A stretch of 64,000 nt of DNA from Epithemia pelagica (Eukaryota > Protista > Bacillariophyta): positions 1,736,001 to 1,800,000 of the forward strand of contig OX337228.1 of NCBI GenBank assembly GCA_946965045.2, given 5' to 3'. Numbering within the stretch: the stretch's first letter is position 1; each line of letters opens with the position of its first letter. The position numbers and the translations under genes were made by a program. Shown here piece after piece: positions 1 to 6,316 of this stretch. The notes under the pieces were generated by a model that had not been told where the DNA came from, did not search any database, and was given only the letters and a program-made list of their open reading frames with translations.

Positions 1-1
1 A

Positions 2-2275
2 CTCACCAGCACCATTGGCTCTGTACATCATCGTGTAACCCGAAGTCCAGATCGAGACGACTTTCCACGTTTTGCTAGTCCAGGTGGAGTCCTGAGTGAA
101 GTGTCTCCGTCTAAGCGCTTGAGAACCACTGAATCGCGTGCTACTGTTCGTGCATCATGTGAAAGTGCGGCTTTGCTCCGAAGGGCTCTGTTCGAATCGC
201 AACAGGAAAGCGATAAGTCTACTACGACGGCCGCAGTCCCAAACTCTTCTATTATTGAGCTTGTTGATGACTTGCCTCCTCCTTCAGAGAAGACGAAGAA
301 GAAAACAGCATATGCTTCTATTATTGAGCTTGTTGATGACTCGCCTGCTCCTTCAGAGAAGACGAAGAAGAAAACAGTAGATGTGGTCGACCTTGTGGAT
401 GAGTTCGATGTAAATGAGTGCATAATGGATCAGGCACCACGTAGAGATGACACTCTTCGATCGGACTCAAAGCCAACAGCTATCCCGAAACGCAAATTAG
501 ACTTTCCTGCGTCCAACGTTCTCGAACTCCTAGAAAGTGATGATGATGATGACGAACTGCTTGCCGGTGGTCCCACTTTCAAAACAAAGTGCGAAAGAGT
601 CCGGTCTTCGTCCTTCAAGGACTCCCAACTCATCGACATCCCTCACGGCGCTTTGCTGTCCATTGCAATTGATAACCGTGAGCGCAACCGTAATTGTACT
701 CCTCGCTTTCTCCGAACGGAGCTTGTGAGGTTGGTTTCGTCTGGTCCAGTTTCATTTGCATGGCCATCGGTGGTGCGTCGTCCACAAGTTGTTGAAATGC
801 CATTGACCTACGGTGACTTCAACTTCCTAATGAAAAATGAGTCTGGAAAAGAGTCGACGCTTGCCGTCATGGTCGAAAGAAAGAGAATTGGGGACTTGGT
901 GCAACGCAGTGCGACCAGAGATCATTGGGGCCAACTTCAGAGGATGCGAGATAGATGCTCTGCCTTGAGTGTGCTACTGTTGGAAGGAGACTTTCGGACG
1001 GCAGCTGCATTCGTTGCCTTTGGTGCACCAGAGGGTTGGCGAAAACGTGACCACGTGATTGATGATGAGGAAAGTCTTCTGAGATTTATGGGTAGAGCAA
1101 TTCTTTCTTCAGGTAGTTTTCGATTTGTCCAAACTAAAGACGAGCAGGAGTCGCTACGAGCCGTCGCAGCTCTTGGCCTTGTCTCGATGGTGGCTTTAGC
1201 AAAGCAAACGGACCAACAGGTTGACAAGTTGAAAAATCCATACAAAGGAAGTGATAATGGTGGCCCACAGATTCTGGCGGATCGTCTACAAGCTGGTGGT
1301 ATCCCGTGGCAGATTGCCAAGGATTTATCTCAAGAGCTGGGATCTGTCCGTCAGTTCGATTCGCTCTATGCTGCGATCGAAGATAGTGAATGCCGAGAAC
1401 AGCTCTTTGCGCCGTTCATCGAAGATGCCTGCCTGCAAGTTGAATCGGAATCTTCACCTCACGCATGGAGTAAGGCCATTCATTCTGCACACTATACGAC
1501 TTGTTGCAATAGCCAGGAGATCCGAGCTCGTTTTCAAGGTACGGAGCAATTTGTTACAGATCGAGCAGAGCTTCTTTCCAGACTTCATTCAGGCCAAGAT
1601 CCAGAAGCAGCCATAAATGCCAGTTTCGATTCAAGTGGAAGTGCGTCGAGCACAGAGCTAGGACGACGTCGAGTTGTGCAAATACAACTCCCCGAGCACT
1701 TGAAAGATACTTTCGAGAGCACTGATTGCCTGCAACATACATCGTTTTACAGAATGCAATATAGTCCGCGGAAAAACCTTGTTGTGATGCAAACAAGGGA
1801 TGAACGGTACGAGTCAGAGCCCTTAGCCATTTTCCTTCTGGAGGGTATTACAATGGTGGAGCAGCTTCGATCCGCCATGAACAAAAATAGCGACTGCTTC
1901 ATTGCTTCACGAAGCCTCGCAGCTCAGTTGGACCGGGAAGTCTGTCGCCGTCCTGTTTCAATGTCACCTTCCTACTTCTCGCGGCGTGTCTTGCTCATAC
2001 GTGGGTTGAGACCCGCGTTGGAGCAAATGGCCAAAAAGTCCGGTTATCGACGAGAGAGTCGATTTGTGTCTGACTTGGCTTTGGCTCATTTAATGATATC
2101 GCATGGAATTGTCGTCATTCATGCCGTTCGAAAAGGAGATGCGGCGGCGGCAACAGCAGCCTCAGCCAGGCGTCAAGAATCGAAACCGCTATCGGATCAA
2201 GCCAAAATATTGCGTTCTTTGGCCTTGGCTTGTTTCCACTTTCAGCTTCTCACCAAGAAGCGATCTTTGTCATAA
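2..2275 (+). CDS. MUS81-like ERCC4-domain structure-specific endonuclease, 5' partial, with a putative second degenerate EME1-like ERCC4 domain
   Basis: The frame is open from base 2 with no stop, so the gene starts upstream of the window. Motifs: IAIDNRER, YGDFNF (GD at 812), VMVERKRIGDL (ERK at 875), LLLEGD, and an HhH-like LQAGGIPWQIAKDL segment. These match the XPF/MUS81 GDx(n)ERKx3D active site. Confidence 0.8.
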   Translation, partial: LTSTIGSVHHRVTRSPDRDDFPRFASPGGVLSEVSPSKRLRTTESRATVRASCESAALLRRALFESQQESDKSTTTAAVPNSSIIELVDDLPPPSEKTKKKTAYASIIELVDDSPAPSEKTKKKTVDVVDLVDEFDVNECIMDQAPRRDDTLRSDSKPTAIPKRKLDFPASNVLELLESDDDDDELLAGGPTFKTKCERVRSSSFKDSQLIDIPHGALLSIAIDNRERNRNCTPRFLRTELVRLVSSGPVSFAWPSVVRRPQVVEMPLTYGDFNFLMKNESGKESTLAVMVERKRIGDLVQRSATRDHWGQLQRMRDRCSALSVLLLEGDFRTAAAFVAFGAPEGWRKRDHVIDDEESLLRFMGRAILSSGSFRFVQTKDEQESLRAVAALGLVSMVALAKQTDQQVDKLKNPYKGSDNGGPQILADRLQAGGIPWQIAKDLSQELGSVRQFDSLYAAIEDSECREQLFAPFIEDACLQVESESSPHAWSKAIHSAHYTTCCNSQEIRARFQGTEQFVTDRAELLSRLHSGQDPEAAINASFDSSGSASSTELGRRRVVQIQLPEHLKDTFESTDCLQHTSFYRMQYSPRKNLVVMQTRDERYESEPLAIFLLEGITMVEQLRSAMNKNSDCFIASRSLAAQLDREVCRRPVSMSPSYFSRRVLLIRGLRPALEQMAKKSGYRRESRFVSDLALAHLMISHGIVVIHAVRKGDAAAATAASARRQESKPLSDQAKILRSLALACFHFQLLTKKRSLS
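246..377 (+). repeat. 69-bp tandem duplication (2 copies) inside the ERCC4 gene
   Basis: cttctattattgagcttgttgatgac...agaagacgaagaagaaaacag starts at 246 and again at 315. The copies encode SIIELVDD(L/S)P(P/A)PSEKTKKKT. Confidence 0.95.
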
Positions 2276-2579
2276 GGAAGCTGGCTCAGTGACTCCAGTT
2301 TTGGTGATTTTGGAACTCGAACCATAGATACAGTTAAAGTTCTAGTACATAAATACATAGCATACAAACTTTGATCTCAAATGTTCCATGCTAGAATGAT
2401 TCTCTATGGACTTCTTCGCATGTGTTCTGATTCATGAAACATGGTTATGACGTGGTAGCGTGGAAATAAAATGACGTAAATAGTCACTCAGATGCTTCTC
2501 CTGCTAGTTTTGTTACATTCATTCAAAGGTGGGAAGACAAGAAACCCCTAAAGGGTAGCTTTTGTGTGACCAACAACAA

Positions 2580-3647
2580 TTACATACGGGCATCCATTCT
2601 CCGATACGAGTCGTCTTCGTGCTCGTCGTGCATTATACGTCCCCGTTCCACAAATCCCATGGACCACCAGTGGCTAAAATCTTCAAAGGATATGAGACGA
2701 TCCCCGTCCTCGTCGATTGAATTAAAGGCCTTCATGGTATATCGATCATCAAGTTCTACTCCCAAGTTCATCAATAACATGGAAAATTCTCGCGCGTCAA
2801 TGTATCCATCGGCATCCGTGTCGTAGGTAGAAAATACCAGCAACAAATAGGATTGATCAGCCAGCGAGTTGCGAAGCAACGCAAACTTTCTGGAAGCATG
2901 TACACCAACGGCCAGCGCCATGACTCCAACAAACAAAAGAAAAGCTCCCGAATAAACACTGGGCGCCCACATTTGACCAATGGAAAGGATACCAACCGTC
3001 ACATAAAGGAAGCCTCGGCCCCACAAAAATCGAAGGATACTGAAGTTTCTTGTAATGAGGTTGCGCACATGCGACCTTAAACTCATGGGATGCGTCGACA
3101 TAAAACGCCCCTCCAAAGCCATGATCATAATTGAAAGAATAGTGATACAGACATACAAAACGATGGATTGTGTCTCAATCGAACTTGGACGGTCAAAATA
3201 AAAGGCTGAAGCGGAAACGACGATTGCCAATAAGGCTCCAAGAAAGGCAGGAACTCTAACAAAAGGTGTTCCTTCCTCGGCCTCGAATTTCCACTTCATC
3301 AAATGGCCGTTGAAAAGACTGTTGACGTGGTTTTGGTTGGCAACAGTTTGCATGTTCCGTTCGGATTCTTCATACGTCCCTTGGTCGTACGAAGTATACA
3401 TCCTATTGTTCTCGGATTGTGAATCCGTCTCCTGAGCCTTCATGGTTTCATCGTGCATATCGTAAGACGAATCATCGGATCGCACTGGTGGAATCACTCT
3501 CATGTTGTTGTTGTTCCTGGCAGAACCGCCTGTTTGTGAGGCTGCCCCTCTGTCTTTGATGGATTGGCCGCCCGTCCGCTTCTTTTCCGAAGAAGAAGTA
3601 GCTTTTCGGGGAAGGCTCGATTTGGGTGAAGCACCAAACCAGCCCAT
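2580..3647 (-). CDS. COPI-associated/TVP15-like membrane protein with C-terminal EF-hand pair
   Basis: Four hydrophobic helices with a FLRFLWGRGFLYVTVG-type motif, then two canonical EF loops (DTDADGYIDAREF, DEDGDRLISFEDF). The N-terminus is MGWFG. Confidence 0.7.
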   Translation of the reverse strand: MGWFGASPKSSLPRKATSSSEKKRTGGQSIKDRGAASQTGGSARNNNNMRVIPPVRSDDSSYDMHDETMKAQETDSQSENNRMYTSYDQGTYEESERNMQTVANQNHVNSLFNGHLMKWKFEAEEGTPFVRVPAFLGALLAIVVSASAFYFDRPSSIETQSIVLYVCITILSIMIMALEGRFMSTHPMSLRSHVRNLITRNFSILRFLWGRGFLYVTVGILSIGQMWAPSVYSGAFLLFVGVMALAVGVHASRKFALLRNSLADQSYLLLVFSTYDTDADGYIDAREFSMLLMNLGVELDDRYTMKAFNSIDEDGDRLISFEDFSHWWSMGFVERGRIMHDEHEDDSYRRMDARM

Positions 3648-3685
3648 GGATGATCACGATGAGGGTTGGTCTGTGAAGAAAGTGC

Positions 3686-3741
3686 TGGTGGTGGTGGTGG
3701 TGGTGGTGGTGGTGGTGGTGGTGGTGGTGGTGGTGGTGGTG
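3686..3741 (+). repeat. (TGG)18 microsatellite
   Basis: Perfect trinucleotide run about 40 bp upstream of the ATG at 3647. Confidence 0.98.
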
Positions 3742-4866: not shown

Positions 4867-6316
4867 TTACGGTACCGTGGGTTCCAAGCCAATTGCTGCG
4901 TCCGCACCAATCCCCAGAGTACAATTGATGGTTCTCAGAGTGGGCTCACTGTTGTTGTCCGGCTGTTGTTCTTGCGCAGCCATGGAGAGATAGGCCAAAC
5001 TGTAATAGGAGTGCAAAACATCGGGAGGTGCCTGGAATAGTTTGCCAAACCCTCCCATGGGCGTTTGACAGGAAAACACATAGTCGCAAAGAGCCCTGTG
5101 ATCCAAGAGATGATGCCGCTGCAAGAGTTGTAGGGTGCCTCCAATCCAATAGGAATAACAGGTATCCTCTGCCTTGTTTGGTCGTCCTTGCATCCCACCC
5201 ACTTGGCGAGAAACACACCAATGAATCAATTCGTGTCGCCAGTCCTCTGTCAAAACTTGATCCAATCGGTTCATTAGTACCAAACTGGCGATACCCGTAA
5301 AGGTGGATCCACCATGTCCCTCTTGACCTGGAATCAATGCCACGCCACCATCCCATGATTTGCATGCACAAATATACTGACAGGCACGGTCCATATCCAT
5401 ACCGGACCAATCTTGCAACAGGTAGGAAATGGCGGCGGCGCAATACAAGAAACGCATATCGTGTTCGCTGCCCACGGCAATACAGGCAAAGGATCCATCG
5501 GACAATTGCAACCTTGACAAGGCTCGGACAATGCCGCGTCGGTCCACCCGACTCAAATCATCGCCCAAGGTTCGTAACGTACACAAGGCAGTATAACTAA
5601 CGAGTACCTCCCCATGGAGAGTAGTGTTGTGTTGGAGGAGTGAGGTTGTAGATTGGTGGTGGATCGTCATCGTCATGCCAAACGCGCAACACAAAAAGAA
5701 AACCAAGGTGTTGAGAGCCTTTCCAAACCAGAAACATGCACACAGCAGGAGTTGGTCCATTCACATTCACTTACGTCATGGCAATGTGTCCATGATTGTA
5801 CTGCCAAGGCGGAGAATGGCCTTCGTTCGTCGTCGTTGTGTTTGTGCGAGCAAAGGATCCCCCTAGAAAGGTTCCTCCCTTGAAACCTACCAAACCTTCC
5901 CATTCCGGTGGCAATCGGTCATTGTCGTCGTCTTTTAATGGCGGAGTGGTCTCTTGTTCTTCGTGTTGCTGTTGTTGTGTGGCCAAGTAGTCTTGAATGT
6001 CTGGTGAGGTGACTTGGAGGGCATAGATCCATTCAATCAAGGCGGCCTTGTTAAGACGTAACTTTAACTGTGCCGCTTCATTTTGCCATATTCCAAACAA
6101 ATCCAAGGCGTGAACAGCAAAATGAACCAAGGTCAATCGATTGGTATCGAGTTTGGCATAGGGCATGGGGACCTTGCGCAAACAATAGGCAAAGTATGCC
6201 ACTTGGCGTTCCTGATCCAACGCCGACAATAACGATGACGGCGACAAAGTGTGAATAGGAGCTTCACTCGGATGGGAGCATGGTTCTTCTCCCGTTTCTT
6301 GTTGTTCGGAAGCCAT
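4867..6316 (-). CDS. PGGT1B: Geranylgeranyl transferase type-I beta subunit (2 exons)
   Basis: Prenyltransferase repeats: YAKLDTNRLTL, GHIAMTYTAL, DMRFLYCA, GQEGHGGST, GRPNKAEDTCYSYW, PDVLHSYYSL. The GT-AG intron 5774-5597 joins the two ORFs in frame (HIAMT|YTAL). The ATG at 6316 is inferred. Confidence 0.93.

Follow-up and report, generated by a model that had tools for sequence, protein, structure and literature searches.

A candidate single-chain MUS81-EME1-like nuclease with a second, apparently dead ERCC4-fold domain in the diatom Epithemia pelagica

MUS81 functions as a heterodimer with an inactive paralogue, EME1/Mms4, and in the known complexes the EME1-type helix-hairpin-helix (HhH) domain, HhH2, adds both to dimerisation and to DNA binding. 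To our knowledge, every characterised nuclease of the XPF/MUS81 family is an obligate dimer, which in eukaryotes is a heterodimer of an active and a degenerate subunit. Here we describe a 64,000-nucleotide stretch of DNA (the window) from Epithemia pelagica (assembly GCA_946965045.2, contig OX337228.1, positions 1,736,001 to 1,800,000 of the forward strand), in which one open reading frame (ORF) encodes an ERCC4 nuclease domain followed by a second domain of the same fold that appears to have lost its catalytic site. We consider it probable that the product is a single-chain MUS81-EME1-like enzyme, in which the dead domain gives in cis the structural support otherwise given by EME1/Mms4. On the best reading of the data, what is new is a single-chain version of a known heterodimeric nuclease, MUS81-EME1 itself being already known.

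A preliminary description of this DNA recognised a possible single-chain MUS81-EME1 at 640-2275; the assignment is supported, with the correction that the ORF, at 101-2275 on the forward strand, is the 3' portion of a gene that runs on upstream of the window. The elements are given below in window positions, with residues numbered in the ORF.

101 to 2275, forward strand: ORF, uninterrupted, 724 codons plus stop, forming the 3' portion of a gene of the MUS81 family
638 to 1219, forward strand: active-type ERCC4 (XPF/MUS81) nuclease domain, residues 180-373, from Pfam, VIA and Foldseek
671 to 895, forward strand: catalytic signature read from the sequence, consisting of D191/E194 (nt 671-682, IDNRE), G238-D239-F240 (nt 812-820) and E259-R260-K261...D265 (nt 875-895)
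1265 to 1510, forward strand: MUS81-type (HhH)2 domain, residues 389-470, from AlphaFold2 (AF2) helices, VIA alignment and family profile
1511 to 1660, forward strand: three-helix connector linking the HhH2 to the second ERCC4-like domain, residues 471-520, from the AF2 model
1670 to 2257, forward strand: second ERCC4-fold domain, predicted to be catalytically dead and EME1-like, residues 524-719, the final domain, from AF2 and structure searches
2273 to 2275, forward strand: stop codon, an end position common to the relatives that span the whole C-terminal domain

The first ERCC4 domain looks active, its sequence displaying the complete metal-binding and catalytic signature of the XPF family. 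Pfam assigns ERCC4 to residues 229-296 (E = 7e-7; 29.6 bits, where the cutoff is 24) as the sole family in the ORF at E ≤ 10, and a phmmer search of the ORF against the PDB gave no relevant match. The GDF and ERKRIGD motifs that had first been placed at 812 and 875 are indeed encoded there, at 812-820 and 875-895. Wherever the alignment gives a relative a residue at the positions of D191, E194, E259-R260-K261 and D265, that residue is unchanged (64-67 of 67), and D239, the aspartate of GDF, is kept in 66 of 67 relatives, with H in the single exception.

An AF2 model of residues 175-724 (550 residues), built from a 36-sequence alignment, has a mean predicted local distance difference test score (pLDDT) of 88.0 and a predicted template modelling score (pTM) of 0.89. 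When it is searched against the PDB with Foldseek the first 11 matches are MUS81 chains (best E 8e-7), and in VIA structural comparisons the nuclease domain aligns with human MUS81 over 163 residues (Z 14.5, root-mean-square deviation (rmsd) 3.0 Å, 22-24% identity). Matches over the nuclease domain to MUS81, Aeropyrum XPF and Hef have Z 13.6-14.8 and rmsd 2.0-3.1 Å; MUS81 (Z 14.8) and Aeropyrum XPF (14.4) are tied, and Hef is also less than one Z unit away. Residues 263 to 551 (the chain end) of human/zebrafish MUS81 align with model residues 6 to 296, that is, from the nuclease domain through the HhH2, whose helices lie at model residues 215-290, and the family profile aligns GIPWQ...LYxxC...LL with the HhH2 of zebrafish MUS81. 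Further upstream, the winged-helix family MUS81-like_WH (PF21136) matches 14 of the 22 full-length relatives at E ≤ 0.1, always in the same place and always under the curated cutoff (best relative E 9e-5, 25.9 bits where the cutoff is 27; upstream sequence of the same genome E 0.25), and a profile of the N-terminal 260 residues yielded no MUS81 HhH or winged-helix match in the PDB. The protein is tentatively assigned to MUS81 rather than XPF because of the alignment with the zebrafish HhH2, the recurrent sub-threshold winged-helix signal and the lack of a helicase-like N-terminus, and the best explanation is that it is a diatom orthologue of the structure-specific endonuclease MUS81. The relative P0038 (1225 aa) has a TFIIB-type zinc ribbon at residues 125-153 (PF08271, E 4e-5, short of the cutoff) along with a weak ubiquitin-interacting motif, and the N-terminal half of the family is therefore variable.

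The C-terminal domain is, on structural modelling, a catalytically dead ERCC4 fold closest to the nuclease-like domain of EME1. The second alpha/beta region, which the preliminary description had put at about 1665-2240, is modelled as a domain encoded at nt 1670-2257 (pLDDT 88-89) that is conserved among relatives; it is neither disordered nor of another fold, the AF2 prediction of an ERCC4 fold being confident. Residues 515-724 modelled separately reach a pLDDT of 88.9 and a pTM of 0.85. The suspected repetition of the ERCC4 strand and helix order is also seen, and the likeness goes well beyond chance: both domains have six strands in matching order and helices in corresponding places (b-a-b-b-b-a-a-b-a-a-b-a-a in the C-terminal domain at residues 524-719 and b-a-a-b-b-b-a-a-b-a-a-b-a in the nuclease domain). 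The ERKxxxD residues are missing from the second domain, as had been noticed, with L-E-G at the ERK position (consensus h-E/D-G) and a loop at the place of GDF that has no conserved acid. The conserved residues are mostly structural, and comprise R524, F549-Y550, RGLxPALDxAAKxxGY, D658, R677 and D699.

Structure searches with this domain converge on one family. The EME1, ERCC1 and FAAP24 type folds named at the outset are all recovered, with the EME1 chain 2ziv_B as the top Foldseek match in the PDB (E 9e-4) and FAAP24 and ERCC1 among the VIA matches; all of the first 30 Foldseek matches belong to the XPF/MUS81 family, with TM-scores of 0.35-0.55. The VIA alignment with the human EME1 nuclease-like domain has Z 10.8 and rmsd 2.8 Å over 127 of 137 residues, followed by Hef (10.4), EME2 (9.6), Aeropyrum XPF (9.5), FANCM (8.6), MUS81 (8.5), ERCC1 and Zip2 (both 7.5) and FAAP24 (7.3), with unrelated chains at or below 5.4. 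In an exhaustive VIA comparison with 48,161 representative PDB chains, which is independent of Foldseek, 12 chains of the XPF/MUS81 family lead (Z 10.3 to 6.4) with EME1 first (Z 10.3), and the best unrelated chain has Z 6.2 over 83 residues; the best family chains leave little of the target domain unaligned, at rmsd 2.8-3.6 Å. The top model in the ESM Atlas belongs to an oomycete cluster with PF21292 (EME1-MUS81_C; TM 0.64, 162 residues, rmsd 3.3 Å) and the next is a cnidarian EME1 (TM 0.61). Language-model features, used for leads only, point to an ERCC4 cluster (0.89), SPO16 (0.87) and EME1 (0.83). Metallophosphoesterase and DUSP26, which came up in profile searches against the PDB (E 0.09-0.6), were set aside as chance matches with which the fold searches disagree.

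The domain belongs to a conserved family. Forty-two further proteins match the ORF, of which 35 cover the nuclease domain to the last residues, and with the representatives of a second search there are 66 relatives that span both halves. Mean pairwise identity is 46% in the nuclease domain, 20% in the linker after it, 35% in the HhH2, 26% in the connector and 36% in the C-terminal domain, which is about as conserved as the HhH2 and is thus a selected domain and not a tail. A profile of the C-terminal domain matches 114 clusters among 1.84 billion representatives, 105 of them at E ≤ 1e-10; only the fused family was retrieved, with no canonical EME1. The long proteins with this domain are MUS81-like, of 850-1400 aa, typically start with MPRPKDAKVWNEDL... 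and always have it last.

No clear stand-alone version of the C-terminal domain is present among the 114 clusters. Short matches were considered as such and rejected, as nearly all are collinear with sub-stretches of the long protein; most begin inside the preceding helices, and P0064 and P0088 begin near the domain boundary. They look like fragments from short contigs or from ORF-based gene calls. P0012, P0018, P0035, P0114, P0115 and about 15 fragments end inside the domain at profile position ~142, after RGLxPALDxAAKxxGY, and this shared end is most simply ascribed to a conserved intron that truncates ORF-based gene models. We infer that the family occurs throughout the diatoms, the closest named relative being from Epithemia clementina (P0002, 1109 aa), at 59% identity across the whole ORF.

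In the single-chain enzyme that we favour, the N-terminal ERCC4 domain with its complete metal-binding and catalytic site would do the cutting and the HhH2 of the same protein would bind duplex DNA. The three-helix connector (model residues 297-310, 314-322 and 327-346), before which the solved MUS81 chains end, would lead back to the dead C-terminal domain, and this would pack on the active domain within the same molecule. There it would take the role of the EME1/Mms4 nuclease-like domain, lending stability to the active domain and helping to form the surface that binds DNA. Possible substrates of the protein would then be 3' flaps, stalled forks and nicked Holliday junctions, with no need of a separate EME1 subunit. 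The intramolecular pairing, the substrates and the independence from a partner are all predictions. The pTM of 0.89 over 550 residues points to one compact assembly in which essentially all ordered parts share a single frame; given how pTM is defined, a floating domain of ~200 residues would be expected to keep it near 0.7 or below. The preliminary description had proposed that both halves of the heterodimer are encoded in one polypeptide, and this holds for the active nuclease and the EME1-like nuclease-like domain, which share one ORF, and fails for the EME1 HhH2, which is missing.

Several observations weigh against this interpretation. A profile of 36 C-terminal domains finds no family match among PDB sequences, EME1 and EME2 included, and hhalign of the C-terminal domain against the nuclease domain of the same protein gives no signal (probability 1%). 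The Z-scores for EME1, Hef and EME2 are nearly tied, within about one unit. There is no second HhH2 (PF21292) after the C-terminal domain, the chain ending a few residues past the last helix, as it does in every relative that spans the whole domain; sequence comparisons of the connector with the HhH2 gave no signal (hhalign probability 0.5%; similarity to the first HhH non-significant, E 0.12). The pTM is the basis for the proposed packing of the two ERCC4 domains on each other, and their pairing by way of the interface known from MUS81-EME1 is a prediction. That this genome has no separate EME1 is presumed from a 2015 survey of other diatoms (PMC4647503). By the usual definitions the C-terminal domain does not belong to the EME1 family, as it lacks both the PF21292 HhH2 and sequence homology to EME1 and does not form a subunit of its own; it works like EME1 at most.

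The state of the gene copy adds to these reservations. In a public assembly that is 99.6% identical to the window (locus L001, in which 6273 corresponds to window position 1) the gene starts with a 51-codon exon (5091-5243), followed by an intron of ~76 nt and a long exon that continues into the window. This long exon has an in-frame TGA at 5998-6000, 273 nt upstream of the window, between NEQADKER and VGWLETASEG, where Epithemia homologues have Leu in a gapless alignment; because of it, P0001, the gene model from the same genome (848 aa), starts just past this point. A null allele, an error of assembly or read-through could each account for the TGA. L001 also has T>C at window position 975. 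The resulting L292P change falls in the strand that precedes the invariant E295, on a residue that is L, F, M or I in all 67 sequences; L001 further has a synonymous A>G at 1852. Run X4 has the same substitutions at 975 and 1852 and, where the HhH2 begins, a deletion of 6 nt (at 1274) that keeps the frame. Since L001 carries both the TGA and L292P, one allele may be decaying, and this copy may not be fully functional; the window haplotype has an intact reading frame over 101-2275. A 3.5-kb contig from run X3 (kind not on record) covers window positions 1-2370 and ~1.1 kb upstream, ends ~95 nt past the stop and leaves the intergenic segment 2437-2523 uncovered. Such a contig is what a full-length transcript would give, and the contigs of one run break off at gene borders and look like transcripts, though contigs are no proof of transcription; no run is on record as RNA.

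The alternative that survives best concerns origin and leaves the proposed function unchanged. The dead domain could have arisen by internal duplication of the MUS81 nuclease domain in the diatom lineage, and have converged on EME1. The domain order, nuclease - HhH2 - connector - nuclease-like, is in its favour, as a plain fusion would give nuclease - HhH2 - nuclease-like - HhH2, and so is the missing second HhH2; the loss of a C-terminal HhH2 after fusion is however an easy event. The two halves have no detectable similarity by hhalign, as noted above, which gives no support to an internal duplication of recent date. In the structure comparisons EME1 (Z 10.3-10.8) scores a little above MUS81 (8.5-9.1). 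The structure scores thus lean towards EME1, and the domain order leans slightly towards duplication or rearrangement. Because no sequence signal remains, descent from EME1 and descent from a duplicated MUS81 domain are not separated, and we regard duplication as somewhat unlikely.

A different possibility is that the dead domain pairs in trans, in a domain-swapped homodimer with two active sites that would be nearer to the archaeal XPF/Hef homodimers. All characterised XPF-family enzymes are dimers, the HhH2 of known members dimerises, and with one HhH2 per chain a second chain could supply the other. Against this, the single-chain AF2 run with its pTM of 0.89 describes a self-contained assembly, and the connector of ~50 residues is ordered and of conserved length. 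We think pairing in trans unlikely.

The C-terminal domain might instead be a docking or DNA-binding module and no surrogate for EME1, with a highly diverged EME1 present separately. Inactive ERCC4 domains have been recruited in this way before: the central domain of ERCC1 binds XPA and Zip2-Spo16 binds branched DNA, and ERCC1, FAAP24 and Zip2 match the C-terminal domain at Z 7-8. EME1/Mms4 is also a rapidly evolving protein that sequence searches can readily overlook, so that its being reported as not found in a diatom survey is weak evidence of absence. However, EME1 is the top match in every structure library, the domain is found almost exclusively fused to MUS81, and the pTM implies that its position with respect to the nuclease core is set. 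A separate docking role is accordingly quite unlikely in our estimate. It is very improbable that the ERCC4 assignment is a modelling artefact imposed on a generic alpha/beta domain, as the blank sequence methods (Pfam and the PDB profile), the modest Foldseek E-values (9e-4 at best) and the TM-scores of 0.35-0.55 might suggest, given two independent AF2 runs that agree at pLDDT 88-89, the 12 best of 48,161 chains coming from one family with near-whole-domain cover at rmsd 2.8-3.6 Å, and concurring Atlas (TM 0.61-0.64) and language-model searches.

The segment of the ORF that precedes the nuclease domain contains a repeated feature.

246 to 377, with a third motif, VDVVDLVDE, at 378-410, forward strand: two tandem 63-nt units, seen in the sequence

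The units have a period of 69 nt, are identical at 61 of 63 positions and each encode SIIELVDD-(L/S)P-(P/A)PSEKTKKKT. With their hydrophobic core and acidic residues, the SIIELVDD and VDVVDLVDE motifs resemble SUMO-interacting motifs and are candidates for that role, and in relatives, too, hydrophobic-acidic motifs (EVICLIDDSPP, VEIVDLVTP) lie N-terminal to the nuclease domain. At ~520-560, after these putative SUMO-binding-like motifs, comes an acidic run, LLESDDDDDELL. Just upstream of the window, at L001 6001-6272, there is an R-x3-H spacing in ..VGKDRRKRLHRLCDELSSSPALRTQGVVLDHMSSG..RALRISLV; a Pfam scan of L001 6001-6810 found no family at E ≤ 1, the R3H domain included. The neighbouring gene at 2580-3647 on the reverse strand encodes hydrophobic, probably membrane-spanning stretches and a C-terminal pair of EF-hands, and just upstream of it is a long trinucleotide run (~3600-3700) that reads as poly-His, poly-Thr or poly-Val according to frame. 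A prenyltransferase beta-subunit-like gene lies at ~4867-5760, also on the reverse strand.

If the single-chain reading is correct, the protein would show which parts of the partner are indispensable, the nuclease-like domain being needed and the HhH2 not, and it would offer a one-gene form of MUS81-EME1 for structural biology and enzymology. It would also settle the matter of the 'missing' MMS4/EME1 in diatom meiotic and repair gene inventories, one of which lists MUS81 for five of six diatoms and Mms4/Eme1 for none of them (PMC4647503); a built-in EME1-like domain may explain why an EME1 gene is not found in diatoms. The oomycetes belong to the stramenopiles too, and there an EME1-type protein cluster of 475 aa exists separately (ESM Atlas). 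A conserved domain of ~200 residues, present in at least 114 protein clusters, is moreover without Pfam annotation, and full-text literature searches found no description of a fused MUS81-EME1 or of a MUS81 with tandem ERCC4 domains. A broader claim can be framed, namely that the first XPF/MUS81-family nuclease to be naturally single-chain is that of diatoms, a monomeric structure-specific endonuclease with an EME1-like pseudo-nuclease fused in cis and the HhH2 of the partner dispensed with, EME1/Mms4 having been absorbed into MUS81 rather than lost; we hold the case for and against it to be evenly balanced.

The closest known systems are the heterodimers MUS81-EME1, MUS81-EME2 and Mus81-Mms4 (PDB 2ZIX, 4P0P, 7F6L, 9F98). 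The diatom protein is like them in having an active ERCC4 domain with GDxn-ERKx3D followed by an HhH2, best matched by MUS81 chains, an inactive second ERCC4-fold domain, best matched by EME1 nuclease-like domains, and a sub-threshold signal of a MUS81-type winged helix upstream. It differs in having both ERCC4 domains in one chain, joined by a three-helix connector, in having neither the EME1-type HhH2 (PF21292) nor sequence similarity to EME1, and in its greater length (~1,100 aa for the full protein in relatives) with extra middle regions. The archaeal XPF/Hef homodimers (PDB 1J22-1J25, 2BGW) share the nuclease fold, and Hef matches the C-terminal domain on a par with EME1 (Z 10.2-10.4), but they consist of identical active subunits each with an HhH2, whereas here an active and a dead domain are in one chain. 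XPF-ERCC1, FANCM-FAAP24 and Zip2-Spo16 similarly pair an ERCC4 domain with a degenerate one, and ERCC1, FAAP24, FANCM and Zip2 match the C-terminal domain at Z 7-8.6; these are two-chain complexes with scores under those of EME1, and XPF and FANCM have a helicase-like N-terminal part in contrast to the HhH plus putative winged helix here. Single-chain pseudo-dimers are known elsewhere, among the monomeric LAGLIDADG homing endonucleases (as opposed to the homodimeric I-CreI) and in two-domain restriction enzymes such as BsmI, which is itself a weak VIA match to the 550-residue model (Z 6.7). In these too two nuclease folds are joined in one chain, and the likeness is one of analogy between unrelated folds and families.

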